A DNA stretch of 64,000 nt from Basidiobolus meristosporus CBS 931.73 (lineage: Eukaryota; Fungi; Basidiobolomycota). The translations under genes and the position numbers were made by a program. This document shows positions 5,346-64,000 of this stretch, piece by piece (positions within the stretch are counted from its first letter, which is position 1; each line of letters opens with the position of its first letter). The stretch is taken from NCBI GenBank assembly GCA_002104905.1, contig MCFE01000394.1, positions 18,387 to 82,386 of the forward strand, in the 5' to 3' direction. A model generated the notes under the pieces. That model made no database searches. It was not told where the DNA came from and saw only the letters and a program-made list of their open reading frames with translations.

Positions 5346-5349
5346 GTTA

Positions 5350-14916: not shown

Positions 14917-15210
14917 AAATCAGTACTAGCTATCCAAGAAAACTTTGGGTGGATTCTTAATAGAACTTACCTAAGACATTTTCACCCAGAAATCAGGTAC
15001 TCTGAACATTGAGCTTCTTGTGATTTCCTAACCTTGAACATATGTTTCTGTGATAAACCTTGACATATTCTGCTTGTTTGATTGTCACGATCTTGTAACA
15101 GTGTAGGCAGTACTTAACATTGTTTTAATCAATATGTGAGCATCTTGCGACCTACTTGCTCTTGGGAGCCGAATATGTGGCTGTCATAATGCCAGCAGCT
15201 TACAATTATT

Positions 15211-15944: not shown

Positions 15945-15949
15945 ATTGA

Positions 15950-16400: not shown

Positions 16401-18684
16401 CACACTTGGAAACCTCAGCCTTACTGCTCTCAATTTGATACTGGCAAAGTTGCTAAATACCTTGTATGGCTGGTTATATATTAATTTTGCAAACATATGC
16501 TGGATTGCTGTCACTTTAGCCATTAGTACATCCTGAGTTACTGCAAAGTACTCTCTGGCACTTAGCCATAGTATTCCTTCTTCCTGCTGGATCTGGGACT
16601 CTTGTAGGTGCCCTCTGGCTCTTGTTTGTGTGAGTTCTGTATTGAAAGATGTGGAAATTGGTTTGTAATCAGGAAAGACCTAGCATAATATAGTAAAGGC
16701 ATCATAAGAAAATTAGTTGCTTTTTGTGACTGACCCTACCTTGCATTACTTAACTAATTACCCATGTGTTGGGACTGCTTAGCTTCTTAGTCCTATAGGT
16801 ATAAGAATCTCCTTGAACACATTTGTACTGATTAGTTTATAACTGCTACTAGCTGTTCTCTGTTAGCCAACTCATCACATCCATGATGGACTTGAAGGAT
16901 ATATTCTTAATGAGTATAGGATAAGGTAGTATTGTACCTTGTCTTGCCCTCCTATTGACATATGTTCTCTTCATAGGAAACTCCCATAGGGTGATGCAAG
17001 ATGCATTATTCACCACAAACCATGCAAGATGGAGTAAAGAATAACAGTAGTGCCCAAGATCTACACACTTAGGTTCATGCTTTTTTATATTCTTGCTGCT
17101 GCCTAATATCTGCCTGATAGGAGATTAGTATCAGCCAGCTGGGTGAAGCAGCAGAAGTACTTGGCTTGATGGGGTATTTCATCATTGATGAGCATATGAA
17201 CTTACTGACTAAGCCTAATTACCAATTTATTTTTATTGATGCCACTGTGCTTTTTTCCTGGTGTAAAAAATCTTGTCTCCTATATTAGTGACTTGTGTGT
17301 GCAAGGACTTAGCTCCTGATGGGTTTGGATCATCTGGTGGCTCCAGATGAGAAACAAGTCCAGTGTTGTAATGCAAATAATATCAGCAGATCATGTAAGG
17401 ATGGTAACTTGTAAACATTAGTGCTTGAAATTTGCATTAGAGAGCAAGCATATAATCACCTAGGTTACAGAGCTGTCATTTAGAAGTGTTATATTTTGAA
17501 TGATTGAGATATATGTTAATGGGAGTACTAGAACATGTTGAAGCTGAGTGTGATAGTCAGCATTGTTTCTACTTGCAGGAAAGCATAAATCCTTGCAAAT
17601 CTGAGTTGCCCAACACAGTGATGAATTGGACATGACAGCTCTAAATTGTTATTAATTATTATGTTCAAGGCACTTCTGACTATAGTCACTTAGGTTAACA
17701 GCCATCTAGGACTTCTACCAAAGGAATATAGCTCATATGACCCTTTTTGTGAAAGTAGCTGCTCCCTTTATTGGCAGTGAATTTCAGTCCCAAGGTTAAG
17801 CATGGCAGCTGAAGCAAGGCAGTACAATGGGGAGTACAGAGGAGCTGTGTCTGCAAAAACTGCTCCCCATCCTAAGTGTTTTTCAAAAGGTACAATCCCA
17901 ATTTTATTACTATTACCAATGATAAGATTCATAGTCAAAAATTAACTCAAATTTCATCAAAGCTTAATTGCAACATATTTTTCACTGATGTGAAACATAT
18001 GCAGAAAGTGTAGGTTGTTAGCCCTGGTGTACCATGAAGCCAACTTGCCTTGTTCTGCCTTAGAAACAAAGCACTCTGTCTAGTCAGAATACTAAGAGTC
18101 TATATACCCTCAATGATTACATACCTATCAGTTGGCATGTGGTAGTTGGACTGAGCATACTTGGTACATTTCCTGAGCAGCACACTGCCAAGCTATTCTC
18201 CACCATCATCAGCTGTAATGAATGCTCACCAAGTCATATCTCATTTTTCAATTTCTAAGCTGTGCTATTACCTCATCAATGCAAAGAGCTTTCAACAATC
18301 ACATTTATAAGTGCAGTAGAGCTCACTGCAACTTTGTATTCATTTGATTAAGGTACAGGAGTACCTCTACTACACCTGCAGTTGTTTTGGGTTGTATTAT
18401 TAATAAGTGCACACTCTCCTTGAGCATAAAGCTTAGTGCAGAATATGTGACTACCACAATTGCTGGCTCCAATCTGCATATTCAGGAACATCTAAAGCTG
18501 CAGCAAAGAGTGTTTTTTTATCAAACATGTATGAGATATTGCTTCATCACTAGTACTGAGTCCATGTCTCATTGACTTCCCAGCATGAATTTATTCAAAT
18601 ACCCAGTTCCTTCACTATTTTGGTATCTAAGTTGTGCCCTTACACTTGCAATACCCCTTCAATTCTCCACAATACTCAAGATAA

Positions 18685-19067
18685 TATTGCAACTTGAGAA
18701 GTGATTTGAATACAAGGAACTTATCAAGAAATTGTGATCATGGTTGAATTACTGTTTATTCATAAGGAGGCTCAGTATTTATACCTTTGTTGTTGTAATA
18801 CAATTGCAATACCAAGTAAGGAGGGCTTTGCAAAATTCAGGAGTATTCTGTGACAGTTATAGGAGTAGTATATAATGCTTTGTTAAAGTGCTAACTCATC
18901 TTAAGTGTTTTGATCTTGACTATAGAGGAATAATAATAGAATTATAGATCTGAAGAAAGTGGTAAAGTTAGGGCTGTAAGTCAGTCCTAGAATGAACAAG
19001 ACTAGTCCAAAATTTTCAAGTGAGTTCTTTGCTGCTGAACAATACTAAATAGCTCAATATTTCTACA
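18685..19067. repeat. Solo Ty1/Copia LTR, more diverged
   Basis: Colinear with 14548-14916 throughout; TG start mutated to TA; TSD unclear. Confidence 0.8.
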
Positions 19068-22208: not shown

Positions 22209-22970
22209 TCAACACTCTCCCTCAACTGAAAAATTTCTCAATCCTAATTCCTCCCTGAGATTCTCATGTTGTGGCCTAGCAAGTGGTTCTGTCAATATAT
22301 CTGCCACCATTTTGTTAGTTGGGCAGTACACTAACTCTACCAAGCTATTTTCTACAGCTTCCCTCACAGAGTGATGCTGTACATCAATGAGCTTAGTCCT
22401 GGCATGATTAGTAGGATTTCTAGCTAATGAGGTACAACTTTGATTATCCTTGTAAATACATGTAGGTGGATTTGAATAAAAACCTAAGTCATTGCGTAAT
22501 TTTTGTAGCCATACAGCCTCCTTAGTTGCTTGGCATGCAGCCATATATTCTGCTTCAGTTGTAGATAGGGCCAAAGTTGCTTGTTTCTTACAATTCCAAG
22601 TAATAGCTGCAGCAGCATAAAGAAATACATATCCTTTGGTAGAACATATGTTAATCAGATCCCTACCCCAATCTGAATCACTATAACCATTAAACGTTTG
22701 CTTATTAGCTGATCCAGAGTATTCCAGTACCATATTTATGGTACTTTGTAGATGTCTGACAATCAGCGTAACTGCTGCAATTTGATCTGATCCATAATTC
22801 TGCATGAATTGACTGACTATTCCAACTGCCACTGCAATGTCTGGATGTGTAGACACCATCAAGTACATTAGGCTACCAACTATTGATTGATAGGGAGTGT
22901 TTTGCTCAATATTTGAGCTGATTTTGTCTATAACTGGCTTAGATATGCTTGATTTCAGGTTATTGTCCAA
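22209..22970 (-). pseudogene. Copia RT C-terminus/RNase H fragment
   Basis: YQSIVGSLMYLMVSTHPDIA, YSDSDW, STTEAEYMA, KLIDVQHH. Confidence 0.9.
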
Positions 22971-24541
22971 AGGAGAAGCTGCAGGTTTGCAATTTTCCTT
23001 TTTGAAGCATCTAAGAATGTCCCTGGTGTACTTGGACTGATTCAGCTAAATTTTCTGCGTAGGATGAACACACCCTTTTTAAGCTGTTTCACATATATAC
23101 TTTAATCTGCAGTGCTACATGAGAACTCAATTTCCTCTAGATATGTGTCAATCTTCTTATACCATGCACTAGGTGCCTGCTTAAGCCCATACAACAGTTT
23201 TCCAAGTTTGCACACCTTTTGAGGGTCTTTAGGATTGGTAAAACCTTCTGGTTGCTCCATATATATAAAGTTTCTTGCAAATTCCCATTTAGAAAGGCTG
23301 TTTTGACATCCATTTGGTGTAGATATAGACTGTGTACAGCTGCCAGGGCTAGAACTTTCCTAATGGACTCAAACCTGGCAACCAGAGCGGATGTTTCCTT
23401 AAATTCTAGTCCCTGGATCTGGGAATAGCATTTACCCACTAATCTTGCCTTATACTTGTCAATGGCACCATTTGGGGTTATCTTGATCTTTAGACCCATC
23501 TACATCCTATTGGCTTTCTCCCATTTGGAAAATCAACCAGTTCCCATGTTTTTGCCATGATCAGTGATTGGTACTCCTTGTACATAGCTAGTTGCACATT
23601 GTAGCATCTGGACTTTGTATTGCCTGTTCCAGATTCTGAGGTTGGGCAAATCAGGCAAGATAAGCTTCTTCATGATCATTAGATGTCTGCCACCAGGATC
23701 CATGAGCACTTCTTATTCTGGTAGATCTCCTGACTGGGATAATCTGCTCTGATCTGGAACTGGTAGATTTATCAAATATTTGTCTTGGCTCCAAAGGACA
23801 GTGTTTTTGTGGGGCCACATATGTTAGAGTGTACAATAGCCAATATTTGAGTGGTATTGACGCCTTCTGAGCTCTTGAAATGTTGCCTAGCTAATATGCC
23901 ATATGAACATCCCTTACAAGCATTCAATTTGATTGGAATTGAGTATTCTAGGCCCAAGACAAGCTGATTTTTCACCAATTGGCTCATTTTCTGTTCCCCA
24001 ATGTGTCCTTGTCTGCTATACCATGTTTCCCAGTTAGTTTCATCAGCTTTGGCAATGTTGACATACTAAGGTACAATGCTCTTGCATTGTGACTTGTATT
24101 TATTGTGACTTTTGATTCCCAAACCTAATTTTGTCCATTTTCACTCAATATTGAGCAGCTCATCTTAGTAAAAACAAATTTCAGTCCCTGAGCAGTTGCT
24201 GCACTGATTGATTGTGGGTTCTTAGCAATAGCAGGTAAATAGAGTACATCAGTCAATGCAGCCATTGTTGCCCCTGAGCTATTGCTCATATTTAGTTACA
24301 TAGACCCCCCTGCAGTAGCTTCCAGAGCAGAGTTATCTCCCAGATAAACCTTTCTTACAGGAAAAGTTTTTAAGTTGCTGATCCACTCCTTTATTCCAGA
24401 AGTATGCTGTGATGCTCCAGAGACAATATACCATTCATTACTTCAGTTACTTGAACTCTCTTATACGGTTACAAATAACTGTTCATCAGTAATTATATGG
24501 TTTGCCTGCTCTAGTTTCTGTTTTTTGTCTGCTTCTTTCAT

Positions 24542-24916
24542 CTAGCATTCTCTTGCCCAGTGTCCTGGCTTTATACAGTAGTTACAGTAAACAGGTTTTC
24601 TTTGGTTTTGTTGCTTCTCCTTCTTTTCTGAGTGCATTTCTGAGCTGAATAAAGCATTATCTTCAATTTTCTCTGCTTGATCATTATATCTGAGTTCTTC
24701 ATGGAGAAGTCTTCCTTTGACAAAGTCTAAAGTCATATTGTTTTCTTTGCTCTCAAAAGAAAGTAAGAGTGACTCATACTTGTCTGGTAGGCTGCAATGC
24801 AGACAGAGTATCTTTTCTTCATCATCTATACCAGCATTAACGCTGTAGAGTTCTTCTGCAAGTGTCTCCATTCTGGTAATGAGTTGTAGCATGTCACCAT
24901 CTGGCTTTGTCCTCAA
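24542..24916 (-). pseudogene. Copia gag fragment with CCHC zinc knuckle
   Basis: LHCSLPDKYESL...LDFVKGRLLHEE and C-x2-C-x4-H-x4-C. Confidence 0.88.
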
Positions 24917-32717: not shown

Positions 32718-35700
32718 TCATCATAACCCAATAAGGTCCTACTTGATATACATATTTCTGTCTGACAGGTATCTGCTGATTCATTTGCTCACTAATGGTA
32801 CTGGTTTGACTGATAACACTGGTATAATGATAGGCTAAGCATATAACTAGTTGATTTGACTAAAAACTGATCTAACTTAAACATTCAAGTGGTAGATCAT
32901 TACAGCCTCCCCTACTAAGGTTGAGAGGGTTCTGCTTAATCCCATTTCCTGTGACACCAATATCCAGATAGTTCATTATTGTTGGCAAGTCTTGTAAGCT
33001 AGAGTCTGTCACTATGAGCTAAATCTTGCCAGATGTTCCCTTGTTTATCATCTAGATGGTAAGTTGCAAATGGACATTGTCTCATGATCTTAAGGGGTCC
33101 TGTCCATTGTGGCTCCAGCTTCTTCCAAGAGTTATTTCTCAGCAATACAAAGCTCTCAAGTGCCAATGCTTCTGGTGATATAGTTTCATTAAATCTCTGC
33201 TTCATCTTTTTAGCACTTTGTGATGCTTTGGCCTGTGTCTGTTGTTGTCTATGTTCCAGTTGCTGGTGTCCACTTGGCTGGCAGAACCCATTTTCTAAGG
33301 CATATGTAAGCTTTGGTTGTGTAACATCTCATGGAGTTCTTAGCTCACATCCATACACTAAGTAAAATGACAGTTGCTGGGTGGTGTTGTGTACTCTAAC
33401 TCTGCATGCAAAAGTGCTTGGTCTATTTACTTATCCCATATACTAACAACTACATTAGTACACTTGGTGAATATTTTTCCAAATATGTCATTAAACCACT
33501 CAGTGACTCCATTCATTCTAGGATGACATGCCATGATTTTCAGGTGTTTGATCTAAAACATTTTCAGTTACTCTTCCAATATCTTTACCATAGTGTTTAC
33601 TCCTCAATTGGATAGAATCTCTAAAGGCCATCCAAACTTCATTAGGATCTCATGGCAGATGAGACTTTCAACTGCTTGTTCACTAGCTACAGGTACTGCT
33701 TTTCAAACTGTCTTACAGGCTCCAAGTGAAAGAGTTTGGAAATTCTCTGTGGTTGGCCTTGGTTAATTTGGCAAATTGGACATGTTTTCACTAGCTTCTC
33801 AATGTCTTGTTTCATTCTGAGCCACCATGCTCTGGCTTTCACAAGGCTACAGGTTCCTTCAAGTCCAGGATGTCTATATCCATTGAGTAGCCTATGTACT
33901 AAATCCAGGAAACCAATATAAGGGCAATAGACAATAGGCAATAGGGCTTCCATCAGCAATTTGGTAGAGTGCTCATCCTGTACCACAAATATGCTAGCTT
34001 CATCCCAGATTATCTTCTTGATCTCTTCATCCACCTTATTAGGAATATCTTAGGCTTCAAGTACTTTGGTAATAAGCTAGGCCAATCTGATATATGCACC
34101 AAGTTAAGTTGTGCAACTTGTTCTAATCTTTATAAGGTATCAGCAACCATGTTGCTTTTGCTAGAGCAGTAAGCAATCTCCAAGTCAAATTGCTGAATGT
34201 ATTCACTCCTTCAACTCATTCTTCTGGAGAGTACCTTCTGAGCAAATGCACACTTGAGTGAGGTATGATCAGTCCTCAGAGTGCACTTGACTCCTTTAAT
34301 GTGGCATCCACAGGTCTTCAAGCAGTGTATTATGGCAAGGATCTCCTTTTCATGCACTGGATAGTACTGCTCTGCTGAGTTCAGCCTCTTGGACCTAAAA
34401 GCAACTGGATAGTCTGTTCCCTCTTGTTCTTAGCTGAGTATTCCACCAATTGCATAGTTTGAAGCATCTTTGCATAAAGTAAACTCTTTTCTGAAGCCTG
34501 GAGTTCTGAAGCTTGGCAACTTAGCAAGTTCATTCTTGAGCATCTGAAAGGCAGTCTCACAGGCTATGTCCTACTTCATAGTGTTGTCTTTCTTGAGAAT
34601 ATTAGTTAAAGGGGCTGCAATACTTCCAAAGAACTTGACAAATGTCCAATAAGAGGAAACCATTCCAAGAAATGAACAGAGTTTTGATATGCTATGGGGC
34701 TGCTTCAGATTCTTGATGGATTCAACCTTCTTGAGGTCTAAAGTCACTCCTATGCTAGCCACTAGGTGTCCCAGGTATTCAACATGTTCCTTCAGGAATT
34801 TACACTTTGCTAGCTTGCCCTAAAGCTTGCTCTCTCTTTGCTTTCTCAAGACCTTTTCAATATGTACCAAGTGTTCTTCTTCTGTCTTGCTGAATATCAA
34901 TATGTCATCTAGGTAGAGTACAACAAACATGTCTAAGTATTCTTGGAAGACTCTTTGCATCAAGGTCATGAATGTTGCAGGGGCATTGGTGAGGCCAAAA
35001 CCTATGATTAGGTACTTGTAATGTCCATATCTGGTCCTGAATGTTGTCTTAGGGATGTCTTTGGGTTTCACCCTAATGTGATTGTATCCTGACATAAGGT
35101 CAATATTGCTTAATAAGGTAGCTCCATTGAGTTGGTCCAAAAGCTCATCAATCCAAGGTATAGGGTACTTATTCTTCATGGTAACTGAGTTAAGAGCTCT
35201 GTAGTCAGTGTACGTCCTAAGTGTTGCATCCTTCTTTTTACAAAAAGTACTGGTGCTCCCCAAGGTGACTTGCTGGGTTTAGTATATCCTTGCTCCAATT
35301 GCTGATCTATTTGTCTTTTCATCTCTTCCAATTCCAACAGACTTATTCTGTAAGGTGTCCAACTCACTGGAGGGCTATCTCCTGCATGAAGGGCATGATC
35401 CTTGTCTCTGACCGGTGGTAGGCTTGCAAGTTCTTCTGGAAATACATCTGCATATTCCTTCAAAAGAGTCTGCACCTTCTGGGGTACTGAAGTAGCAAAA
35501 TCCTCCTGTAATACTGCCATGAGAAACATATGGGTACCTTTTCTAAGAGCTCTACATAAATGTGTCCTGCTAAGTTCACTTGTTTCACACATGCTGGAAT
35601 TGACAAAGTTAAAATCCAGTCTGGCAGGTAATAGCTCATAGGTCTTGTTGTCCTGGATCTGAGTAGCATGGGTTCTCTGGTTGATTGACCAATTACAACA

Positions 35701-37262
35701 AAATAGCCAGGTTTTCATGTACAAGGTCAAACTTGCAGTTCCTAAATATATAGGCCTGTAGGTCTTCTTCATAGTCATCAATGTTAACTGCTACTGGCTG
35801 AGTAATAGAGTTGATTATGTGAGAGTTCCCACCACCTGTTGAGATTGAAGTTGATTTGGTGGGTTCCAAGTTGATTGCAGCTTTCAAAGCAAATTGCTCT
35901 GACATGTACTCATGTAATGCTCCTGAGTGAATTATGATCTTGGCAGGTACTCCATTGATTACTCCATTGAAGTATAATAGCTTTCCTGAGTTTGAGGTCA
36001 TCTGGGATAGGTATGCTTCTGTCATATTGAAGATGAGTTCTGAGTCTTTGTCAAGTTCATCCTTCATGTTACTATGCTTAAGGGCTTCAATATAGTTGAA
36101 GATTCTTAATGGCTGGTATCCATTTCTTCTCTGAGGGCAGTACTTTACAATATGTCCCTGCTGGTGGCAGTTAAAGCAAAGTCCTCTTTTCTTACATTCT
36201 TCTGAGGTAGGATTTTTCTGCATAGCATCTATTTCCATTGTCACTGCTTCTGATTGTCTTCTTATATAGTGATTGTAGCTTCTCTGATTAGTCACTGTAG
36301 GCTTTCCAACTTCAAACATAGCCAAGTCATAGTCAATGGCAATCTTGATAGCTTCTTTGATGGTCTGAAATCTTCAATAATTCACTTCCTTGCAAGTTCT
36401 TTCTTTCAACCCATCAATAGAGTATTCCACATGATGCAGGGGCTCCATTCTTTCAGTTTGTCTAAGTAGACATCTATATTCATAGATGTACACCTGAACC
36501 ATTCCTTTACTCCTGAGTGCCTATAACTTTCATCTTAGTAGTGTCTGCTGGTGTAGGGGTGCAAATCCATCCTTGATTTCTGATGCAAACTCATCCCAGG
36601 TACAGATAGTAGAGCATCCCATCATGGTGGCTGACATGATCTTGCTGTCATACCACTGTAAAGCTGCACCTACCAGGTAAGAGGCTGCATAGTGTGACTT
36701 GCTTTCTGGAGTAATTCCCTTAGCATTGAAAGCTTCTTCAATCTGGAGGAGCCAAGCTCTCAGGTTTTCATTGACTCCACCATGGTACCGGTTGACCTTC
36801 ACACTAAAGTTGCTCTTGACAGGGTTTTGCTAGCTTTGGGCCATGGTAGATTTTCAGACATCTTGAGGGAGGTTTCTGGTTGTTGCTGCTACCAATGTTA
36901 CAAGTGTTAATATAAGAGTTGTAGAAGAATAGGAAGTTTATCTAGTGTTGTATTCAATAAAATTTGGACTGATCTTTATTGAGGTTCCAGAGGCCCCTTA
37001 TATACATTTTGCCAGATCAATTCCTGAATAATTGTGTTTCCTAATGTAGGTTGTGGCTGATGACTCACTTGATTGCATCATCATCACCCAATATGATCCT
37101 ACTTGATATATCTATTTCTGTCTGATAAGGATCTGCTGATTCATTTGCTGACTAATGCCACTGATTTGATAGATAACACTAATACATTGATTGGCTAAGC
37201 ATATAGCTAATTGATTTGACTAAAAATGATCTAATTGAAACATTCAAGCTGCAGATCACAAA
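32718..37262 (-). mobile_element. Near full-length Ty3/Gypsy LTR retrotransposon, inactivated
   Basis: 5' LTR ~36896-37262; PBS tggtagcagc (tRNA-iMet-like); gag CFNCHQQGHIVKYC; RT YLDDILIFS; integrase HPG...WWLRM...CPICQ; GP-F/Y motif; PPT agtaggggaggc; partial 3' LTR ~32718-32904. Confidence 0.93.
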
Positions 37263-52409: not shown

Positions 52410-52454
52410 TCGTAAACTTGCCACAACATAAGATACAGAGACAGCTATCGATAA
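52410..52454 (+). pseudogene. 3' remnant of a family B gene marking the left edge of the array
   Basis: agatacagagacagctatcga matches the end of 62094-62411 (RYRDSYR); downstream flank colinear with 62470-62570. Confidence 0.65.
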
Positions 52455-52687
52455 GAATAGGTTTAATAAACAAGATAATGTATCGTATAATCGACATCAC
52501 TCTAGTTTCCCTGTTGATGTAAGCTATCAAATGCACACAATTCTTCTGTGAACCAGTGTCTGGTCTTGAGTTTGTCAAATACCCTTGTTTTCATAATGGT
52601 AACGGCTATATTTCTGCTATCACGTATAAGGCGAAAATGAATAATGGAACTTTATTGGATTTGGGTTCAAGTGCAGTCGGTGGTATA

Positions 52688-53263
52688 TTAAGTGTCACCC
52701 ATGGGCTCAGTATACTGTGAGTCCTGATCAGCACAGTCATCACCACGTTGAACATCTTCCATGGGCTCAGAGTACTGTGTATCTTGGTCAGAGCATCCTT
52801 CGATGCATTGGGTGTCCACTACTGGTGTGGAGTATGTCTCATCTTGTGCAGGCTGAGCCATAACAATGGGGTAACCAGAGCCATTGTCTGAGTATTCAGC
52901 ACCCTTCTGTTTGGCATACTCGGATGCGCTGGCTGAACATTCTACTTCAAGGCTAGGGCCTGCTTGAAACTGAACATCGAGACTCTTATCACTGTTGGCG
53001 TTGGCAGTATTTAGATTGTCATGCTTTCTGGTCACGGTGGTGAGCACCTGACGTAACAATGGCACTTGGACGTTTGGCGTTTCAACAGTGGGCTGAACCT
53101 GGACTTGCTGGTAGCAGTTGCTTGCTTGGTCCGAGCATGAATACCTGCGATAACGGACTCTTCTATGCTCACGGTTGCATGATTCGGAGCATGGGACTGG
53201 AGCAGCAATGGTGGCTTGAAGAGAGGCAAGGCCCAAGATCAGTGATACAATGAATGCACGCAT
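52688..53263 (-). CDS. Family A secreted protein, copy A1 (191 aa)
   Basis: Signal-peptide-like N-terminus, Cys/Arg/Tyr N-terminal block, acidic 20-aa repeats, TATA-like element upstream, AATAAA downstream; three close paralogues. Confidence 0.85.
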   Translation of the reverse strand: MRAFIVSLILGLASLQATIAAPVPCSESCNREHRRVRYRRYSCSDQASNCYQQVQVQPTVETPNVQVPLLRQVLTTVTRKHDNLNTANANSDKSLDVQFQAGPSLEVECSASASEYAKQKGAEYSDNGSGYPIVMAQPAQDETYSTPVVDTQCIEGCSDQDTQYSEPMEDVQRGDDCADQDSQYTEPMGDT

Positions 53264-53564
53264 CTTTGAGAACTACTGAGTTCATTGCTAAGTACGCTCG
53301 GGAATGTATAGCGTGGGAACCATTATAACATGGTTACAACACTGATGGTAGCAATAGTTAGTTAACTTTGATCAGATCTCAAATTAGCATTCTCTCTACC
53401 ATCATCGACTCAATTGCATTGATATCGCGTACTTTATTTGGTTACAGTACGATAAATACACCAATACGTACACCAATACGTACACCAATATATACACATA
53501 TGCTTTTGATAATATTTCAGCTGTAGTATAGTAACTTACGAATCAATGCTAATGACGTTACATT

Positions 53565-54007
53565 TTAATATAAGGAGTTCAAATGAAATGATTGTTTATT
53601 GTGTCTATATCTACTAGAATATCTGGGCCAATCTCTTGTATTACTTCCGGTATCCTGATCAGCGCATCCTTCAACGCATTGGGTGTCTACTACTGGTGTA
53701 GTGTATGTCTCATCTTGTACAGGCTAAATCATAACAATGGGGTAATTAGAGTCATCTTCTGAGTGTCCAGCACCCTTCTGTTTGGCATACTCGGATGCGC
53801 TGGCTGAACATTCTACTTCGAGGCTAGGGCCTGCTTGAAACTGAACATCGAGACTCTTGTCACTGCTGGCGTTTGCAGTGTTTAGATTGTCATGCTTTTT
53901 GGTAACGGTGGTGAACATCTGACGCAACAATGGCACTTGGACGTTTGGCGTTTCAACAGTGGGCTGAACCTGGACTTGCTGGTAGCAGTTACTTGGTTGG
54001 TCCGAGC
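53565..54007 (-). pseudogene. A' pseudogene: family A body with a family C-like tail, 5' deleted
   Basis: Lacks first ~43 codons; CAG>TAG at 53724-53726; frame continues GCADQDTGSNTRDWPRYSSRYRHNK...*. Confidence 0.8.
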
Positions 54008-54550
54008 GGGTTTACAACTTATAACCACATGTTGATAGTCACTGATAAATACACAATAATACCCTTAACAGTCACTATTCCTATGACCCTTCAATTTCAG
54101 ATCAACACAACTCGAAGATTCACCTGCTACACTGGAGATCACTTGGATAGAGGTGATGGTGACGTAAGTTGATTGGTGCAATGCATAATGCTAAATCGTA
54201 AATTTAGCTATTAACCAGAGTAGCTTAGCGATCAACGACTATGAAATCAAGAACTACGTAAGAACGAAGCCATTCCTGTGTGCTCATCTCAAGCCATAGT
54301 ATGAGTCGTTTTGGTTTGTTCCTTCACTACCGCTTATGTCATTCCCAAGTGGAATAGCAAACCCAGAATTGAAGAATGTTTATTTACTTTTCTACATGTA
54401 CTAATCAACTCAGTGAAATGCTGATTAAATTTACTCACCTTTGCTTCATAATTTAGTAAACTGGGTTTGGTTGCTGATGATCGCTGATGAATCTAGCAAA
54501 CCATACATAAAAGCAACTGTTTGCCTTGCAGTGTGTCATCAAGAGCCAAC

Positions 54551-55003
54551 ATGCAACGTACTTTCCGCATTCTATCAGCCCTAGTATTCCTATTCGGGGT
54601 ATCTTATGCATCGCCCATTGCAACGTATGACAACCAGCAAATAGAACAGCCTCCGTATTTCGACCAGGGTATCCAAGCGGACTTTGGTGGCAACACCGAC
54701 AATGAACCATCAATATCATTCACTCCAACATACAATCAACTAGAGTCCCCAGAAGCCTATCCATTGCTAGACAACGCTCAGACGAATTCTGCACAGAACG
54801 CTCAGGCACTTTCCAACCAAAATCAATTTGAGCAAGTGCAGCTAGTCGATCAGACATTGTACCAACCATCTGCGCCGACATATGTACAATCAATTACTCC
54901 CGACGAGGATGACACTGAAGACTCTAGTGAAGATGACGATCAACCATCGTGTAAACGTTGTCAACGACGCTATCGTAGACGTAGATACAGAGGCGGCTTT
55001 TGA
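54551..55003 (+). CDS. Family B secreted protein, copy B1 (150 aa from the ATG)
   Basis: MQRTFRILSALVFLFGVSYA signal, acidic body, CKRCQRRYRRRRYRGGF tail; tacataaaa about 40 nt upstream. Confidence 0.85.
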   Translation: MQRTFRILSALVFLFGVSYASPIATYDNQQIEQPPYFDQGIQADFGGNTDNEPSISFTPTYNQLESPEAYPLLDNAQTNSAQNAQALSNQNQFEQVQLVDQTLYQPSAPTYVQSITPDEDDTEDSSEDDDQPSCKRCQRRYRRRRYRGGF

Positions 55004-55645
55004 CTCAATCGGATCATGTAAACACTAGTTTGGCATTCATAATAAATCCTATCAAATAGTCGCTGCCTCTGTAAGCTATCCAATACACACATTTCTTCTG
55101 CAAACAAGATTACACCAACTGACATCAGAGGAGACGTGACCACAGGGATGAGTGGAATGAGCATCATGAACATTCTGGCAATGACTCCTCAAACGATAGT
55201 GTGAATCATTTTGATTTTGTTCCCACCGATTTGGGAACAATAACGGAAAATCTACTAAAATGGAATGGTGGTGAGCAACTTGAATCACATAAATGGATGA
55301 GAGTATAGGTAATGAAGTACATAGATCGATGATACACAGGTTTGATTGGCTGTGGATTGTTTTTATTCATATTTTTGTGGTCTGATGATTGGACACATAG
55401 AATAGCTATCGACATAGGATTGATTTTACTCAAGTTAGTTCAATAATATAGTATACCCTTCTCCTGAATTGGTGACTGGACTTCGGATCATCAGAGGGGA
55501 GTATGGAAATTGGCGTGGTGTTGAGTTTGTCAAACGCTCTTGTTCCCATGCTTGTAATGGCTATACTTCTGCTATCACATATGAATCAAAAAATAACATG
55601 AATAATGAAACTTTATTGCATTTGGGCTCAAGTGCAATCGTTGGT

Positions 55646-56224
55646 TCATTGATTGTCTTCCATGGGCTCAGTATACTGTGAGTCCTGATTAGCACAGTCA
55701 TCGCCACATTGAGCATCTTCCATGGGCTCAGTGTACTGTGTATCTTGGTCAGAGCATCCTTCGATGCATTGGGTGTCCACTACTGGTGTGGAGTATGTCT
55801 CATCTTGTGCAGGCTGAACCATAACAATGGGGTAACCAGAGCCATCGTCTGAGTGCTCAGCACCCTTCTGTTTGGCGTACTCGGATGCGCTGGCTGAACC
55901 CTCTACCTCGAGGCTAGGGCCTGCTTGAAACTGAACATCGAGACTCTTGTCACTGTTGGCGTTGGCAGTGTTCAGATTGTCATGCTTTCTGGTCACGGTG
56001 GTGAACACCTGACGCAACAATGGCACTTGGACGTTTGGCGTTTCAACAGTGGGCTGAACCTGGACTTGCTGGTAGCAGTTGCTTGCTTGGTCCGAGCATG
56101 AATACCTGCGATAACGGACTCTTCCATGCTCACGGTTGCATGATTCGGAGCATGGGACTGGAGCAGCAACGGCGGCTTGAAGAGAGGCAAGGCCCAAGAT
56201 CAATGATGCAATGAATGTACGCAT
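55646..56224 (-). CDS. Family A secreted protein, copy A2 (192 aa)
   Basis: Intact ORF, paralogue of A1, A3 and A4. Confidence 0.87.
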   Translation of the reverse strand: MRTFIASLILGLASLQAAVAAPVPCSESCNREHGRVRYRRYSCSDQASNCYQQVQVQPTVETPNVQVPLLRQVFTTVTRKHDNLNTANANSDKSLDVQFQAGPSLEVEGSASASEYAKQKGAEHSDDGSGYPIVMVQPAQDETYSTPVVDTQCIEGCSDQDTQYTEPMEDAQCGDDCANQDSQYTEPMEDNQ

Positions 56225-56565
56225 CTTTGAGAACTACTGAGTTCATTGCTGAATTCCCTCTGGAATATATAGCATGGGAACCATTATAACGAGGTTACAA
56301 CGTTGATGGTAGCAATAGTTAGTTAACTTTGATGAACTCACACCTTGTCAGATTGAAAAGCAGCATTTGCTCTGCCATCATCGGCTCAATCGCATTGATA
56401 TCGCGTAGTTTATATGGTTACAGTACGATAAATAAACTGATAAATACACCAATATATATATCAATATATACACATATGCTTTTGATATTTCAGCTGTAGT
56501 GTGGTAATTCACGAATTACGGCTGATGTTTCATATTAATATAGGGTGGCCAAATGACATGTTTAT

Positions 56566-56940
56566 TTAATCAATGTATCGATTCCCACTGAAATATCTGA
56601 TCTTGAAGTACTTATGTGCCGACCTCTTGTACTTCTTCTGGCCTCCACCATAGCTACGGGTGGCTGGCTGGGTAATGATGATCCGTGGCTGTTGCTGCTT
56701 AGGCTGATAAAAGGTTTGATCAACTACCTGCGCTTGGTCAAACTGATTAGAGTTCGACAGGGCATCAGGATTACTGGATGAGTGAGCGTTCACTCTGTCC
56801 AACAGGGCCTGTCTTGGTTGCATGTCGGCTATATTGAAGTTTGGCATGTCGTAGGATGACTCTGGCTGAGTTGAAGTGTCATCCATCGAGTCCTCACCTT
56901 CGCCCTCATTCTCATCCATATAGTGATCACCCTCGTCCTG
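56566..56940 (-). pseudogene. Family C copy with 5' end, signal peptide and promoter deleted
   Basis: Colinear with 59471-59860, then joins at ~56940 to sequence matching ~60830. Confidence 0.8.
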
Positions 56941-57209
56941 TCATACCAAAGTGGTTTAGCACGCCCAGAATTGAAGAGAAATGTTGATTTATATTTCTTG
57001 ATGTACTGAAGTGATTGATCATCTGGATTACGATGTTACTCAACTCTTACTCACTGATCATTGCAATGAAAGTGAAATGCTGATTAACTTTACTTACCTT
57101 TGCTTCATAATTTAGTAAACTGGGTTTGGTTGATGATGATCGTTGATGGATCTAGCAAACCATACATAAAAGCAACTATTTGCCTTCCAGTGTGTCATCA
57201 AGAGCCAAC

Positions 57210-57644
57210 ATGCTATGCACTTTCCACATTCTATCCGTCTTAGTATTCCTATTCGGTGCATCTTATGCATCGCCCATTGCAACGTATGACAACCAGCAAG
57301 TAGATCAGGGCATCCCGGTGGATTTTGGTGACAATGCCGACAATGATCCATTAATGTCATACACACCAACATACTATCAACTAGAGTCTCCAGACACCTA
57401 TCCATTGTTGGACAACGCTCAGACTAATTCTGCACAGAATGCTCAGGCACTTTCCAACCAGAATCAATTTGAGCAAGTGCAGCAAGTAGATCAGACATTG
57501 TACCAACCATCTGCACCGACATATATGCAATCAATTACTCCCGACGAGGATGACACTGAAGACTCGAGTGACGACGACGATCAGCCATCGTGCAAACGTT
57601 GTCAACGACGCTACCGTAGACGTGGATACAGAGGCAGCTCTTGA
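57210..57644 (+). CDS. Family B secreted protein, copy B2 (144 aa)
   Basis: Intact ORF with an in-frame 18-bp deletion relative to B1/B3; same tail. Confidence 0.8.
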   Translation: MLCTFHILSVLVFLFGASYASPIATYDNQQVDQGIPVDFGDNADNDPLMSYTPTYYQLESPDTYPLLDNAQTNSAQNAQALSNQNQFEQVQQVDQTLYQPSAPTYMQSITPDEDDTEDSSDDDDQPSCKRCQRRYRRRGYRGSS

Positions 57645-58125
57645 TGAAATCAGATCATGTAAACACTAGTTTGGCATTCATAATAAATCCCATCATATAA
57701 TCGTTATTTCTGCAAGCTATAAAACACACACATTTCTTCTGCAAACAAGATTATAACAACTGATATCCGGAAGAAACAGCGGAGACGTGACCACTGGGAT
57801 GAGTGGAATGAGCATCATGAACATACTGGTAATGAACCCTTAAACAATAGTGTGAATCATTTTGGTTTTGTACCCTCCAATTTGCGAGCAATATTGAACA
57901 AACTACTAAAATGAAATAGTGGTGAGCATCGTGGATAGCAATAAATGGATGATGGTATAGCTAATGAAATACGTAGATCGATGATACATAGGTTCAATTG
58001 GCTGTGGATTGTTTTTATTGATGATTGGCCACATAGAATAGCTATCAACTGAGCTTCGGCTGCTGATGATTGTTGATAAAAACAAAAGCAACTTTTCGTA
58101 TTCCAGTGTGTAACTAAGTGCCAAT

Positions 58126-58234
58126 ATGCAACGTAATTTCCGCATTTTATCCACACATCTACGTCGACATATGTGTAACCATTTACTCCCCACGAGGATG
58201 AAGACCAAGACTTGAGTGACGATGACGGTCAGCC
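58126..58234 (+). pseudogene. Doubly deleted family B remnant
   Basis: atgcaacgtaatttccgcattttatccac fused to the PSASTYV/DEDED region, then fused at cagcc to sequence matching ~62790. Confidence 0.75.
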
Positions 58235-58544
58235 ACACTCTAGGATGTCCGATCTCCATATTGACTAAGCCCTCGTTGAGCATATTAAATGAGCCACCCA
58301 CTACCTCCAAGCAGGACTTAAACACGTTTATAGCCAAGCTTTACCAGCTTCTTACCCCTCTCCTCAATTGGTGGCTGGACTTCGGGTCATCAGAGGGAAG
58401 TATGGAGATTGGCGTGGTGTTGAGTTTGTCAAATGCTCTTGTTCCCATGCTGGTAATGGCTATATCTCTGCTATCACATATGAGACGAAAAATAAAATGA
58501 ATAATGGTGCTTTATTGGATTTATGCTCAAGTGCAGTCGTTGGT

Positions 58545-59123
58545 TCATTGAGCGTCTTCCATGGGCTCAGTATACTGTGAGTCCTGATTAGCACAGTCAT
58601 CGCCACATTGAGCATCTTCCATGGGCTCAGTGTACTGTGTATCTTGGTCAGAGCATCCTTCGATGCATTGGGTGTCCACTACTGGTGTGGAGTATGTCTC
58701 ATCTTGTGCAGGCTGAACCATAACAATGGGGTAACCAGAGCCATCGTCTGAGTGCTCAGCACCCTTCTGTTTGGCGTACTCGGATGCGCTGGCTGAACCC
58801 TCTACCTCGAGGCTAGGGCCTGCTTGAAACTGAACATCGAGACTCTTGTCACTGTTGGCGTTGGCAGTGTTCAGATTGTCATGCTTTCTGGTCACGGTGG
58901 TGAACACCTGACGCAACAATGGCACTTGGACGTTTGGCGTTTCAACAGTGGGCTGAACCTGGACTTGCTGGTAGCAGTTGCTTGCTTGGTCCGAGCATGA
59001 ATACCTGCGATAACGGACTCTTCCATGCTCACGGTTGCATGATTCGGAGCATGGGACTGGAGCAGCAACGGCGGCTTGAAGAGAGGCAAGGCCCAAGATC
59101 AATGATGCAATGAATGTACGCAT
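58545..59123 (-). CDS. Family A secreted protein, copy A3 (192 aa)
   Basis: Intact ORF; identical to A2 except the penultimate residue. Confidence 0.87.
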   Translation of the reverse strand: MRTFIASLILGLASLQAAVAAPVPCSESCNREHGRVRYRRYSCSDQASNCYQQVQVQPTVETPNVQVPLLRQVFTTVTRKHDNLNTANANSDKSLDVQFQAGPSLEVEGSASASEYAKQKGAEHSDDGSGYPIVMVQPAQDETYSTPVVDTQCIEGCSDQDTQYTEPMEDAQCGDDCANQDSQYTEPMEDAQ

Positions 59124-59470
59124 CTTTGAGAACTACTGAGTTCATTGCTGAATTCCCTCTGGAATATATAGCAGGGGAACCATTATAACATGGTTACAAC
59201 ACTGATGGTAGCAATAGTTCGCTAACTTTGATGAACTCACACCTTGTCAGATTGAAAAGCACCATTCACTCTACCATCATCGGCTCAATCGCATTGATGT
59301 CGCGTAGTTTATATGGTTACAACACGACAAATACACTGATAAATACACCAATATATACCCTAATATATACGCATATGCTTTTGATAAAATTTCAGCTTTG
59401 GTGTGGTAATTCACGAATTACGGCTGATGATGTTTCATATTAATATAGGGTGACCAAATGAAATGTTTAT

Positions 59471-60025
59471 TTATTCAATGTATCTGTTCCCACTGAAATA
59501 TCTGATCTTGAAGTACTTATGTGCCGACCTCTTGTACTTCTTCTGGCCTTCACCATAGCTACGGGCGGCTGGCTGAGTGATGATGATCCGCGGCTGTTGC
59601 TGCTTAGGCTGATAGAGGGTTTGGTCGATAACCTGCGCTTGGTCAAACTGATTGGAGTTCGACAGAGCATCAGCATCACTGGATGAGTGAGCGTTCACTC
59701 TGTCCAACAAGGCCTGTCTTGGTTGCATGTCGGCTATATTGAAGTTTGGCATGTTGTAGGATGACTCTGGCTGAGTTGAAGTATCATCCATTGAGTCCTC
59801 ACCTTTGCCTTCATCTTCGCCCTCATTCTCATCCATATAGCTATCACCCTCATCCTGTTCCGGCTGATAGTCATATGCAGGCGATTGAGTTTCTAGGTAG
59901 CAAGGACTTATTTGCTCCCCGCACAAGTTGTTGTCGTTGCTAACCTGAGAAAAGGTACCTTCTGTGGCGGTTAATGCATGGATAGATGCAAAGTACAAAG
60001 CGAACAAAGCGAGAGTAAGCTGCAT
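59471..60025 (-). CDS. Family C secreted protein, only intact copy (184 aa)
   Basis: MQLTLALFALYFASIHA signal, aaaATG context, ctataaag about 40 nt upstream, acidic body, Lys/Arg/Tyr-rich tail, stop overlapping AATAAA. Confidence 0.83.
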   Translation of the reverse strand: MQLTLALFALYFASIHALTATEGTFSQVSNDNNLCGEQISPCYLETQSPAYDYQPEQDEGDSYMDENEGEDEGKGEDSMDDTSTQPESSYNMPNFNIADMQPRQALLDRVNAHSSSDADALSNSNQFDQAQVIDQTLYQPKQQQPRIIITQPAARSYGEGQKKYKRSAHKYFKIRYFSGNRYIE

Positions 60026-61096
60026 TTTGATGAATAGCGTAAAACTAGTCGTAAGCTCACTTTATAGTGGTATTTGGCGTAGTCTATTATACTGCATCCT
60101 ATATCTGACTCACTTGAAGCCATGAATTCACATTCCATGTCCAGCCGTGGTTGACTATCCACTAAGTACTTGTGAAGATATGGGCTCATATGGATAATCG
60201 AGATTCGTTGAATTAAGTGCACTTATCGGTACATTAAGTGTCATCCATAAAGTCTGCAGTCGGTGAGTCCTGCTAAGCACAATCATTACAACACTGAGCA
60301 TATTCCGTGGGCACAGTGTATTGAAGCAGCAACGACGGCCAAAAGAAAAAGTAGCTACGTCATTGAGCATTTGGAAAGCCATATGTTAATAGTCGCAGTG
60401 ATATATTCACACTAATACCCTTAGCAACCACGATTCCTATGAATCTACAATTTGAAATCAACGCAAATCTAGGTTCATGTTTCGACTTGAAGTTCATCCG
60501 CGGCAATAGAGATCCCTTGGATAGAGGCGCTGTATCAAGCCAGCAAAGTGATGCCGACTTGTGGTGGTTGATGCAATGCTTGATGCTAAATCGTTACTCT
60601 AGCTCAGTATGCTACCGAATGATGACTGGTAAAATATGAATTCATTCATAATCCCATAATACGCATTAAAATAGCTACAGATCGCTATATAACCTGTGCA
60701 GGTTACAATTCTATGACTATGAAATCAAGAACTACGTAAGAACGAAGCCATTCCTGTGTGCTCACCTCAAGCCATAGCTTGAAAAGGCGTAGTGTGAGTC
60801 ATTTTGGTTTGTCTCTTCACAACCGCTAATATCATTCCCAAATCGTGCGGCAGCGCAGAATTGAAGAATGTTTATTTATTTTTCTTCATGTACTGAAGTG
60901 ATTGGTCGCCGGAATTACGGTGTTAATCAGCACCTATTCACTGATCATTACAATGAAAGTGAAATGCTGATTAACTTTACTCACCTTTGCTTCATAATTT
61001 AGTAAGCTGGGTTCGGTAGCTGATGATCGCTGATGAATCTAGCAAACCATACATAAAAGCAACTGTTTGCCTTCCACTGCGTCATCAAGAGCCAAC
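60026..61096. promoter_or_regulatory. Divergent intergenic region between C (-) and B (+)
   Basis: TATA-like elements ~40 nt upstream of each ATG; the B-proximal part is conserved upstream of B1, B2 and B3. Confidence 0.5.
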
Positions 61097-61549
61097 ATGC
61101 AACGCACTTTCCGCATTCTATCCGCCTCGGTATTCCTATTCGGTGTATCTTCTGCGTCGCCCATTACAACGTATGACAACCAGCAAATAGAACAGTATCC
61201 GTACTTCGACCAGGGTATCCAAGCGGACTTTGGTGGCAACACCGACAATGAACCGTCAATGTCATACACTCCAACATACTATCAACTAGAGTCCTCAGAC
61301 GCCTATCCATTGCTAGACAACGCTCAGACGAATTCCGCACAGAACGCTCAAGCACTTTCCAACCAGAATCAGTACGACCAGGTGCAGCAAGTAGATCAGA
61401 CATTGTACCAACCATCTGCACCGACATATATGCAATCAATTACTCCCGACGAGGATGACACTGAAGACTCGAGTGACGACGACGATCAGCCATCGTGTAA
61501 ACGTTGTCAACGACGCTACCGTAGAAGTAGATACAGCGGCCGCTTTTGA
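61097..61549 (+). CDS. Family B secreted protein, copy B3 (150 aa)
   Basis: Intact ORF, paralogue of B1. Confidence 0.85.
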   Translation: MQRTFRILSASVFLFGVSSASPITTYDNQQIEQYPYFDQGIQADFGGNTDNEPSMSYTPTYYQLESSDAYPLLDNAQTNSAQNAQALSNQNQYDQVQQVDQTLYQPSAPTYMQSITPDEDDTEDSSDDDDQPSCKRCQRRYRRSRYSGRF

Positions 61550-61959
61550 TTCAATCGGGTCATGATAACGCTAGTTTGGCATTCACAATAAATCCTATAA
61601 AATAATCGCTACTTCTGTAAGCTATCCAACACACACATTACACCAACTGACATCAGAGGAGACGTGACCACAGGGATGTGTGGAATGAGCAATGACTCCT
61701 CACATCAAACATTTTGGTTTTGTTCTCTCCAATTTGCGAACAATAATGAATAATGGCAAGCAGTCGTGGTGAGCACTAAATGGATGATGGTATAGGTAAT
61801 GAAGTGCGTAGATCGATGATACATAGGTTCAATTGGCTGCGGATTGTTTTTATTGATGATTGGCCACATAGAACAGCTATCAACATAGGATTAATTTTAC
61901 TCAACTGAGCTTTGGTTGCTGATGATCGTAGATAAACACAAAAGCAACTAAGAGCCAAT

Positions 61960-62411
61960 ATGCGACGTAATTTCCGAATTTTATCCACGCATTTTATCCA
62001 CGCATTTTATCCACCTTAGTATTCCTTTTCGGTGTATTCTATGCATCGCCTATTGTTACATATGGCAACCAATAAGTAGACCAGGGTGTCCAAGTGGACT
62101 ATGAGACTGAACCATCGATATCACATGCGCCGGGAGATTACCAGCTAGAGTCCCTAATTACCTATCCCTTGTTGAACAATATTCAAACCAACTCCGTACA
62201 GAATGCTCAGGCACTTCCCAACCAGAATCAGTATGGCCAGGTGCAGCAAAGAGATCAGACATTGTACCAACCATCTGCGTCGACGTATGTGCAATCATTG
62301 ACTCCCGACGAGGATGAAGACCAAGACTCTGGTGATGATGACGATCAGCCATCGTGTAAACGTTGTCAACGACGCCACCGTAGACGTAGATACAGAGACA
62401 GCTATCGATGA
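61960..62411 (+). pseudogene. Family B pseudogene B4
   Basis: 13-bp unit attttatccacgc triplicated in the signal peptide (frameshift) plus an in-frame CAA>TAA; 3' part still open (62094-62411). Confidence 0.82.
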
Positions 62412-63097
62412 GAACAGGTTGTTGGCCTTTCTACATTTTATGACTATTGTGATCTCAGCAAAATAAATAGGTTAATGTATCATACAATTGATTTTACTCC
62501 AGTGTCCCTGTTCATGTAGGCTATCAAGTACACCCAATTCTTCTGTAAACAAGCTTTCAAGTATAAACACTAGGAAAAAAAGATACACAAGAGATGTGCC
62601 CACAGGGATGGGTGGAATAATGGCGAGTATCAACAGAGATTGAAGTAAGGGAAAGAGCCGATCAAGCGCTAATTTTCTCAATTATAATAAGAATCACTCG
62701 TCTGTGGTGCATGTTATATGTGCGCTCAGGATACTATGTTTTCTGGCAATGGTAGTGAGTAATAGTTGGACTTCTTGAGATAGCGATACACTCTAGGATG
62801 CCCGATCTCCATATTGACTCGGCCCGGGTTGAGCTTATTAATTAAGCCACCCAATACCTCCAAGCAGTACTTAAACACGTGCATAGCCAAGCTTTACCAG
62901 CTTCTTACTCTTCTCCTGAATTGGTAGCTGGACTTCGGGTCATCGGAGGGAAGTATGGAGATTGGCGTGGCGTTGAGTTTGTCAAACGCTCTTGTTCCCA
63001 TGCTGGTAATGGCTATATTTCTGCTATCACATATGAGACGAAAAATAACATGAATAATGAAACTTTATTGGATTTGGGCTTAAGTGCAGTCGTTGGT

Positions 63098-63676
63098 TCA
63101 TTGAGTGTCTTCCATGGGCTCAGTATACTGTGGGTCCTGATTAGCACAGTTATCGCCACATTGAACATCTTCCATGGGCTCAGTGTACTGTGCATCTTGG
63201 TCAGAGCATCCTTCGATGCATTGGGTGTCCACTACTGGTGTGGAGTATGTCTCATCTTGTGCAGGCTGAATCATAACAGTGGGGTAATCAGTGCCATTGT
63301 CTGAGTGTTCAGCACCCTTCTGTTTGGCGTACTCGGATGCGCTGGCTGAACCTTCTACCTCGAGGCTAGGGCCTGCTTGAAACTGAACATCGAGACTCTT
63401 GTCACTGTTGGCGTTGGCAGTGTTCAGATTGTCATGCTTTCTGGTCACGGTGGTGAACACCTGACGCAACAGTGGCACTTGAACATTTGACGTTTCAACA
63501 GTGGGCTGAACCTGGGATTGCTGGTAGCAGTTGCTTGCTTGGTCCGAGCATGAATACCTGCGATAACGGACTCTTCTATGCTCACGGTTGCATGATTCGG
63601 AGCATGGGACTGGAGCAGCAACGGCGGCTTGAAGAGAGGCAAGGCCCAAGATCAAGGATACAATGAATGTACGCAT
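63098..63676 (-). CDS. Family A secreted protein, copy A4 (192 aa)
   Basis: Intact ORF, paralogue of A1-A3. Confidence 0.87.
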   Translation of the reverse strand: MRTFIVSLILGLASLQAAVAAPVPCSESCNREHRRVRYRRYSCSDQASNCYQQSQVQPTVETSNVQVPLLRQVFTTVTRKHDNLNTANANSDKSLDVQFQAGPSLEVEGSASASEYAKQKGAEHSDNGTDYPTVMIQPAQDETYSTPVVDTQCIEGCSDQDAQYTEPMEDVQCGDNCANQDPQYTEPMEDTQ

Positions 63677-63952
63677 CTGTAAGAACTACTGAGTTCATTG
63701 CTGAATTCACTCTGGAATATATAGCATGGGAGCCAGTATAATATGGTTTTAACATTGATGGCAGCAATAGTTAGTTAACTTTGATCAGATTGAAAATTTG
63801 CATTCTGTCTACCATCATCGCGTAGTTTGCATGATTACAGGAGGATAAATACACTGATAAATACACCAATAAGTGCACATATGCTTTTGATACTCCAGCT
63901 GTAGTATAGTGATTTAGAATCAATGCTGATGTTTCATTTTAATATAAGGTGG

Positions 63953-64000
63953 TCAAGTGAAATGATGTTCATTGTGTCTATTTCCACTATAATATCCGAG
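63953..64000 (-). CDS. 3' end of the next A'/C-type gene; continues beyond the window
   Basis: Reads LGYYSGNRHNEHHFT*, homologous to the C tail IRYFSGNRYIE*; flank matches 53500-53600. Confidence 0.6.
   Translation of the reverse strand, partial: LGYYSGNRHNEHHFT

Follow-up and report, generated by a model that had tools for sequence, protein, structure and literature searches.

The window analysed here is a stretch of 64,000 nucleotides (nt) from Basidiobolus meristosporus CBS 931.73, and its last part, from 52.4 to 64.0 kb, which is the end of an 82-kb scaffold (MCFE01000394.1), carries a tandem array of small genes of three types that we call A, B and C. Comparison with the sister species Basidiobolus ranarum indicates that the three are parts of one modular, Basidiobolus-specific system, whose products are predicted to be exported and largely disordered, and that a gene fission or fusion separates the layouts of the two species. 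Our preferred, though still tentative, reading is that A, B and C would make up an abundant, self-associating extracellular material of the wall, the spore surface or the capilliconidial adhesive.

Fused genes in B. ranarum

Uninterrupted open reading frames (ORFs) of B. ranarum hold an A core in their front half and a B- or C-type core with its tail in their back half. Such genes encode P0080 (361 amino acids (aa), L007:5900-6985), P0084 (292 aa, L008:6001-6879), P0088 (256 aa, L009:86-856) and an unnamed protein of 260 aa on the minus strand (L007:860-1642), and the length of the fusion genes equals three times the protein plus a stop codon. The architectures were called with hidden Markov models built from modules of the type found in the window. 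Seven B. ranarum proteins have the order Acore-BCcore, with or without a Ctail, while the A genes read as Nmod-Acore-Atail, the B genes as BCcore-Btail and the C genes as BCcore-Ctail. On aligning the fusions jointly with the split genes, both halves are seen side by side. The front of the fused layout consists of a signal peptide, a short Cys-x6-Cys N-module and the A core (PLLRQVFTTVTRK...YQAGPS), and its rear of a variable spacer (acidic, Met- or His-rich), the B/C core (ALLD...ALSNSNQFDQAQ..DQTLYQP) and an Arg/Lys/Tyr tail. In B. meristosporus the same layout is split, such that A genes carry the N-module, the A core and an acidic tail, and B and C genes carry an acidic block, the B/C core and a basic tail. 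At L007, an A-B type gene is found 4 kb from an A-C type gene on the opposite strand, both in the midst of housekeeping genes. In orientation this pairing matches the divergent arrangement of B versus C-A in the amplified unit of B. meristosporus.

As the parts are fused in one species and separate in the other, we infer that the A and B/C parts are functional partners. The initial annotation had proposed that A, B and C act as one extracellular system of charge-complementary proteins. The single-exon fusions of B. ranarum lend independent support to joint action, and the complementarity of charge is not borne out by the composition of the proteins (see below).

Two further observations were made on the fused proteins and their surroundings. 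In P0080, and in P0079/P0095 from a 50,325-bp scaffold of B. meristosporus, the spacer between the cores is not acidic and consists of His-rich KPKKHHT-type and Met-rich MEMP-type repeats, which is the usual composition of metal-binding segments. The two fusions at L007 of B. ranarum, A-B and A-C, have between them a gene (L007:3189-4070, plus strand) for a 293-aa predicted secreted protein rich in Thr, Val, Ile and Ser, with a Cys/Lys/Pro-rich end, a wall- or adhesin-like look and no Pfam match on record.

Some gene models of B. meristosporus (P0007, P0013, P0015, P0021, P0022 and P0066) also join these genes, and were rejected as fusions since they need modelled introns or cross a frameshift. 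In the window, P0007 (243 aa, 55646-56940, minus strand) splices the broken gene C1 onto A2, so that the tail of C, the spacer and the signal peptide of A are left out, and comparable merged models are present at other arrays (P0015, P0021, P0022, P0066, P0100 and P0101). Run X3 gave no read evidence for a C1-A2 joint of the P0007 type.

Organization of the array

The array (52410..64000) was delimited by repeat families, a tblastn map and the end of the scaffold. It consists of four tandem units of 2.9 or 4.5 kb, each made up of A (minus strand), C or A' (minus), B (plus) and a broken B (plus). A repeat search found A-derived segments of 300 nt in 5 copies of 90-93% identity, spaced by 2961, 2899 and 4553 nt, and B-derived segments in 4 copies, a repeat structure that is far beyond chance. 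Copies were mapped from the ORFs and by tblastn with A3, B1 and C2 as queries, and the broken copies were translated as they stand, with no repair or joining. This gave 4 intact A, 3 intact B and 1 intact C gene, besides the broken copies A', C1 and B4 and two fragments. Each intact gene is a single ORF of 144-192 aa. Thus the repeated unit described in the initial annotation, with A at 52688, 55646, 58545 and 63098, and the intronless nature and length of the intact genes agree with the ORFs, the repeats and tblastn.

The first unit begins with A1 (52688..53263, minus strand, 191 aa), which is followed by A' (53649..54023, minus). The latter matches A residues 38-162 at 84% identity, has neither a start codon nor a signal peptide, carries one in-frame stop and is diverged at its basic C-terminal end, so that its earlier listing as a gene copy does not stand. 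The unit continues with B1 (54551..55003, plus, 150 aa). The second unit has A2 (55646..56224, minus, 192 aa), which is 99.7% identical in DNA to A3, and the broken C1 (56566..56940, minus; C residues 57-184 at 90% identity), a 5'-truncated copy whose first 56 codons are gone and which has stops upstream and no signal peptide. These are followed by B2 (57210..57644, plus, 144 aa) and a broken B remnant (58092..58316, plus; about 58126-58235 in the tblastn map) with a start codon at 58126 and a large deletion inside. The third unit is formed by A3 (58545..59123, minus, 192 aa), C2 (59471..60025, minus, 184 aa), B3 (61097..61549, plus, 150 aa) and B4 (62001..62411, plus). A short A fragment (60240..60323, minus, residues 163-190) sits in the spacer between C2 and B3. 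B4, at 67% identity to B, lacks a start codon and is interrupted by a stop in frame beyond the signal-peptide region. Finally, A4 (63098..63676, minus, 192 aa) lies 324 nt from the scaffold end. A look-up of A4 showed position 64000 to be the last base of the scaffold, and therefore the end of the array coincides with an assembly break. The statement that the array runs off the window holds in that it reaches 64000, which is the end of the scaffold as well.

The 52 kb upstream of the array contain just four ORFs of at least 150 aa, all of them decayed copia- or gypsy-type retroelement ORFs (RVT_2, copia gag, RVT_1, RVP_2), which bears out the transposon-rich neighbourhood described earlier. 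These long terminal repeat retrotransposon remains are on the minus strand at 22209-24916 and 34820-36325 (copia RVT_2 and gag, gypsy RVT_1 and aspartyl protease). Rfam gave no match on 50-64 kb.

Relationship among A, B and C

The three types had been described as three protein families without a recognised homologue. The comparisons argue against three independent families. B and C match each other by BLASTP (5e-14), and their cores align in hhalign at 97.9% probability over 35 columns of 60% identity, with the consensus ALLD...ALSN.NQF.Q.Q..DQTLYQP. Also, the Arg/Lys/Tyr tails of B and C align with each other. The N-termini of A and C match at an hhalign probability of 82%, which is partly due to the signal peptide, and have in common the signal peptide and a Cys-x6-Cys-Tyr-Gln module. 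A single core common to A, B and C was considered and dropped, as the A core against the B/C core gave an hhalign probability below 1%, with no detectable relation.

The second part of that description is upheld. In word-indexed searches relatives were found in B. meristosporus and B. ranarum only, and an HMMER profile search with the C alignment over 1.84 billion representatives returned 28 proteins, of which every traced match is from Basidiobolus. BLASTP and profile searches thus gave no characterised family outside the genus. Profile searches of the PDB with all three alignments found nothing at E up to 1, and the best ESM Atlas scores (0.69-0.81) are at chance level; the matches at that level have the character of secreted matrix proteins that are disordered, casein and MEPE among them. 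Pfam searches with A, B, C and 17 A members gave sub-threshold matches only (ProSAAS, Myticin-prepro, Evasin). Myticin-prepro (PF10690) reached at best 18.4 bits against a gathering threshold of 28.5, in 2 of the 17 A members, and gave no match with the A of the window. ProSAAS (PF07259) reached 18.9 bits with B1 and 12.3 bits with B3 against a threshold of 23; since ProSAAS is an animal neuroendocrine family, we take this match to be compositional. CBM_1 had no match at E up to 5 in the 17 A members, and the UniRef names CBM1 (for a few A members), SCP, C2H2-type and C3H1-type were set aside as spurious, having no Pfam support.

Protein features

The N-termini of intact A, B and C have a basic n-region followed by a stretch of 10 residues with a mean Kyte-Doolittle value of 2.2-2.6. 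The n-, h- and c-regions are all present, with small residues at -3/-1 before the likely cut, and the hydrophobic maximum lies within the first 20 residues, the mature part being hydrophilic. These features fit a signal peptide, as had been noted at first, and export is predicted. At 144-192 aa and with no Pfam domain, the proteins fall within the range of small secreted proteins (less than about 300 aa when mature, with no transmembrane or known enzyme domain).

The charge profile confirms the blocks that had been described, cationic at the N-terminus in A and at the C-terminus in B and C. In A the cationic block lies at residues 31-45 and the C-terminal half is acidic, while B has a charge of +8 in its last 15 residues and C of +9 in its last 45. 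Yet the net charge of the mature proteins is -17 for A, -12 for B and -14 for C (pI 4.1-4.4). All three are block polyampholytes with a net negative charge and not charge-complementary partners, and with values of -12 to -17 in all three the proposed complementarity fails. Their mature parts have a mean hydropathy of -0.9 to -1.2 and are rich in Gln/Asn (16-21%) and Tyr. AlphaFold2 (AF2) models of A and C show almost no secondary structure past the signal peptide, with a mean predicted local distance difference test (pLDDT) of 39.6 for A and 50.2 for C and a predicted template modelling score (pTM) of 0.10-0.11, from shallow alignments of 15-17 sequences. This absence of a confidently predicted fold fits A and C being largely disordered, with the caution that such shallow alignments call for.

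The arrangement of the blocks allows another function, which we regard as the main rival and consider rather doubtful, namely that the proteins are charge-masked precursors. The acidic block would neutralise a cationic Arg/Lys/Tyr peptide (the tails of B and C, the N-terminal block of A), and a Kex2-like protease would free this peptide to act against bacteria or other microbes in gut or dung. Such precursors would be expected to run from signal through acidic block to basic tail, which is what B and C show, their last 15-45 residues carrying +8 or +9. The tails are also preceded by dibasic pairs, namely KR in the B and C of the window and, in most C-type proteins of B. ranarum, KK or RK. The sub-threshold Pfam matches to Myticin-prepro in two A members and to ProSAAS in B point the same way. 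But the KR of B is part of a conserved CxxC for which B. ranarum has CRGC, CSRC or CSGC, and is therefore not a conserved cleavage site. Also, P0079 and P0076 have no dibasic pair ahead of the C tail, and the cationic block of A is weak in the B. ranarum A protein P0020. A precursor role further leaves the fusion of the A core to B/C proteins unexplained, and the strongest constraint falls on the neutral Gln/Asn-rich cores instead of the tails, as shown next.

Selection and expression

dN/dS, the ratio of nonsynonymous to synonymous substitution rates, was calculated by the Nei-Gojobori method on pooled intact copies (15 A, 8 B and 10 C). The values for the whole gene and the core are 0.42 and 0.08 for A, 0.21 and 0.12 for B, and 0.29 and 0.11 for C, with the reservation that the copies were compared in non-independent pairs and have probably undergone gene conversion. 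The direction is clear, and the intact copies are under purifying selection. The constraint falls mainly on the basic tail and the two neutral cores, and the cores remain conserved between two species whose overall identity is about 40%. The core and tail of C are nearly invariant between the species, while its acidic block varies in length and composition and is Met-rich or His-rich in some relatives.

The expression evidence comes from run X3, which comprises 27 Mb of contigs and covers the array patchily at 100% identity. Its contigs cover A3, B3, the B remnant and one C paralogue, and do not cover B2. Those identical to B3 span 60908-61411, inclusive of 190 nt upstream, at a word depth of 53-94. 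One contig joins 58132 to 58204 across the B remnant, a skip of 71 nt (58133-58203) with GT..AG ends. X3 is probably RNA because of this skip and the patchy coverage. The B remnant hence seems to be transcribed and spliced, leaving a short ORF, and transcription of A3 and B3 is probable, not proven.

These data bear on whether the array is mostly non-functional amplified DNA, that is, a segmental repeat with decaying ORFs that have been called as genes. Broken copies are indeed many in every array (A', C1, B4 and the fragments in the window), and gene models merge neighbours (P0007, P0013). However, dN/dS well under 1 with strong constraint on the cores, the retention of these cores between the two species despite the low overall identity, the intact ORFs maintained on many scaffolds and the probable transcripts in X3 make this reading highly improbable.

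Amplification across the genome

The same unit, in the order C and A pointing one way followed by broken B and B pointing the other, is arrayed in tandem on four further scaffolds (L003-L006), hence on at least five with that of the window. The units there are of the same two types, one of about 4.5 kb with a full C and one of about 2.9 kb with a 5'-truncated C. The co-amplification of A, B and C claimed at the outset therefore holds in B. meristosporus. In B. ranarum nine copies of C alone make up an array of 11.7 kb and five copies of A alone one of 8.7 kb, so the strict co-amplification of three genes is specific to B. meristosporus. Cluster members have distinct locus tags on ten or more scaffolds. 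Summing the members of 90% clusters gives about 180 distinct predicted sequences (about 89 A-containing, 35 B and 56 C), some merged gene models included. In a second, diverged subfamily, A (165 aa) and C (174 aa) are neighbours on 10 or more scaffolds, the pairing being judged from consecutive accession numbers. Its clusters (P0010 and P0057) hold 23 and 22 distinct sequences, and its B. meristosporus scaffolds include those of 73,629, 157,485, 104,839, 160,168 and 41,650 bp.

DNA identity among copies is 92-99%, and a copy frequently has its nearest relative on a different scaffold, which implies either that whole arrays were duplicated or that some scaffolds are allelic. More than 1000 short contigs from each of the DNA runs X1 and X2 align to a 5.6-kb stretch, roughly half with 95-99% identity, and this pile-up fits many near-copies. 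In these two runs the segment upstream of B3 (60740-61113) has a summed contig depth of 15,000-19,000 as against 3,200-10,200 over most of the B3 coding region, so the upstream segment of B may have more copies than the B gene itself. Runs X5-X7, from another sample with the same species label, gave just pieces of 31-54 nt with 1-2 differences. Several of these pieces, including the deepest at 59595-59648 in C and 61378-61410 in B (word depths 486 and 513), fall within or next to the conserved B/C core, which suggests that the family is multi-copy in another isolate too.

The homogeneity of the copies is relevant to the proposal that A, B and C are effectors directed at a host or an insect, which would be released in infected tissue or the gut of herptiles, with Arg-rich tails serving for uptake into host cells or the binding of host polyanions. 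We consider this improbable. Small, predicted secreted, genus-specific proteins beside a transposon-rich stretch would suit such a role, and the Arg-rich tails resemble cell-penetrating motifs. Basidiobolus is moreover an animal-gut dweller and an opportunistic pathogen (PMC9391592). But the paralogues are homogeneous at the identity given above and under purifying, not diversifying, selection, and the probable RNA signal of X3 comes from a culture-derived library.

A possible extracellular material

We return to the reading that A, B and C form an extracellular material. The products would be made in bulk at a fixed ratio, the high gene number serving dosage in the manner of the silkmoth eggshell gene-pair arrays, and would come together extracellularly as material of the wall, the spore surface or an adhesive. 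The basic Tyr-rich tails may bind the acidic blocks, and the conserved Gln/Asn-rich cores with their short beta-prone stretches (QIIITQ, QVFTTVT) may also drive association. A more specific version, which we think unlikely, is that the A core and the B/C core are the halves of a new fungal self-assembling material, for example a capilliconidial glue or a conidial or zygospore wall, held by electrostatic interactions between blocks together with the Gln/Asn-rich, beta-prone cores. Gene fission and amplification of the cassette would then have turned one ancestral protein into a dosage-tuned system of several components that accounts for about 1% of the predicted proteome.

Several results weigh against a bulk material made at fixed ratio. 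As all three proteins are net acidic, there is no pairing of polycation and polyanion between genes. The A-only and C-only arrays of B. ranarum mean that a fixed ratio of the three genes is not required in the genus, and the 400-nt upstream regions of the three genes have no 8-mer in common. The number of copies per haploid genome is uncertain because allelic or homeologous copies may be among the scaffolds, and the low AF2 confidence may stem from the shallow alignments. With regard to transcription, the library type of X3 is listed as 'DNA?', itself a guess, and the run listing has no runs labelled RNA.

Comparison with known systems

In gene arrangement the silkmoth chorion A/B arrays are the closest parallel. 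There, two related families of small secreted structural proteins are encoded by paired head-to-head tandem genes whose copies are highly identical, with pseudogenes interspersed (PMC4639761). The head-to-head pairs, the many tandem repeats, the near-identity of copies and the pseudogenes between them recur in our array, and the spacers are comparable, being about 270 nt or about 1.07 kb between C and B here and about 330 nt in the Hc chorion pairs (PMC4639761). On the other hand, the cassette has a third gene (A) downstream of C, no shared promoter element was found among the upstream 8-mers, and the structural role is demonstrated for chorion and only proposed for A, B and C. The likeness is in arrangement alone, without homology, as there is no Pfam, PDB or profile match outside Basidiobolus.

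Charge-masked cationic peptide precursors include mussel myticin, amphibian skin peptides and the propieces of defensins and cathelicidins. They combine a signal peptide, which is predicted in A, B and C as well, with an anionic block that offsets the charge of a cationic Cys/Arg/Tyr segment, as in A, B and C, and here too the genes form multigene clusters. They differ in that the cleavage site is not conserved in A, B and C, in which the neutral cores are the most conserved part. Another comparison is with the fungal KEX2-processed repeat proteins (KEPs), in which at least 3 repeated cores are separated by KEX2 sites (KR/RR) within one secreted protein (PMC6339444). These are secreted fungal precursors with dibasic sites that often form lineage-specific families (PMC6339444, PMC7329392), and A, B and C, as predicted secreted proteins, resemble them in these respects. 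In the alignments of A, B and C no internal repeat has dibasic sites at its flanks, and the acidic QYTEPMED repeat, present twice in A, is not bordered by KR. Unlike in KEPs, repetition in the cassette is at the level of genes and not within proteins.

The polyampholyte or coacervate adhesives of marine animals, such as sandcastle-worm cement and mussel foot proteins, are secreted disordered proteins with separate acidic and basic Tyr-rich blocks, encoded by multigene sets, features that are present or predicted in A, B and C. There is no homology to A, B and C, which show no sign of 3,4-dihydroxyphenylalanine (DOPA) or phosphoserine and have no net-cationic partner, all three being net acidic. 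The capilliconidia of Basidiobolaceae bear an apical adhesive (PMC13370150), whose tie to A, B and C is hypothetical.

Implications

Whichever function applies, about 180 predicted proteins that are now labelled 'hypothetical' collapse into one modular family, and several public gene models in the arrays look wrongly merged. If the reading as a bulk material is true, the family would be a first molecular handle on the sticky or resistant spore surfaces of an early-diverging, insect-dispersed gut fungus. It would further provide a clear example of dosage being tuned by dividing one protein among co-amplified genes.

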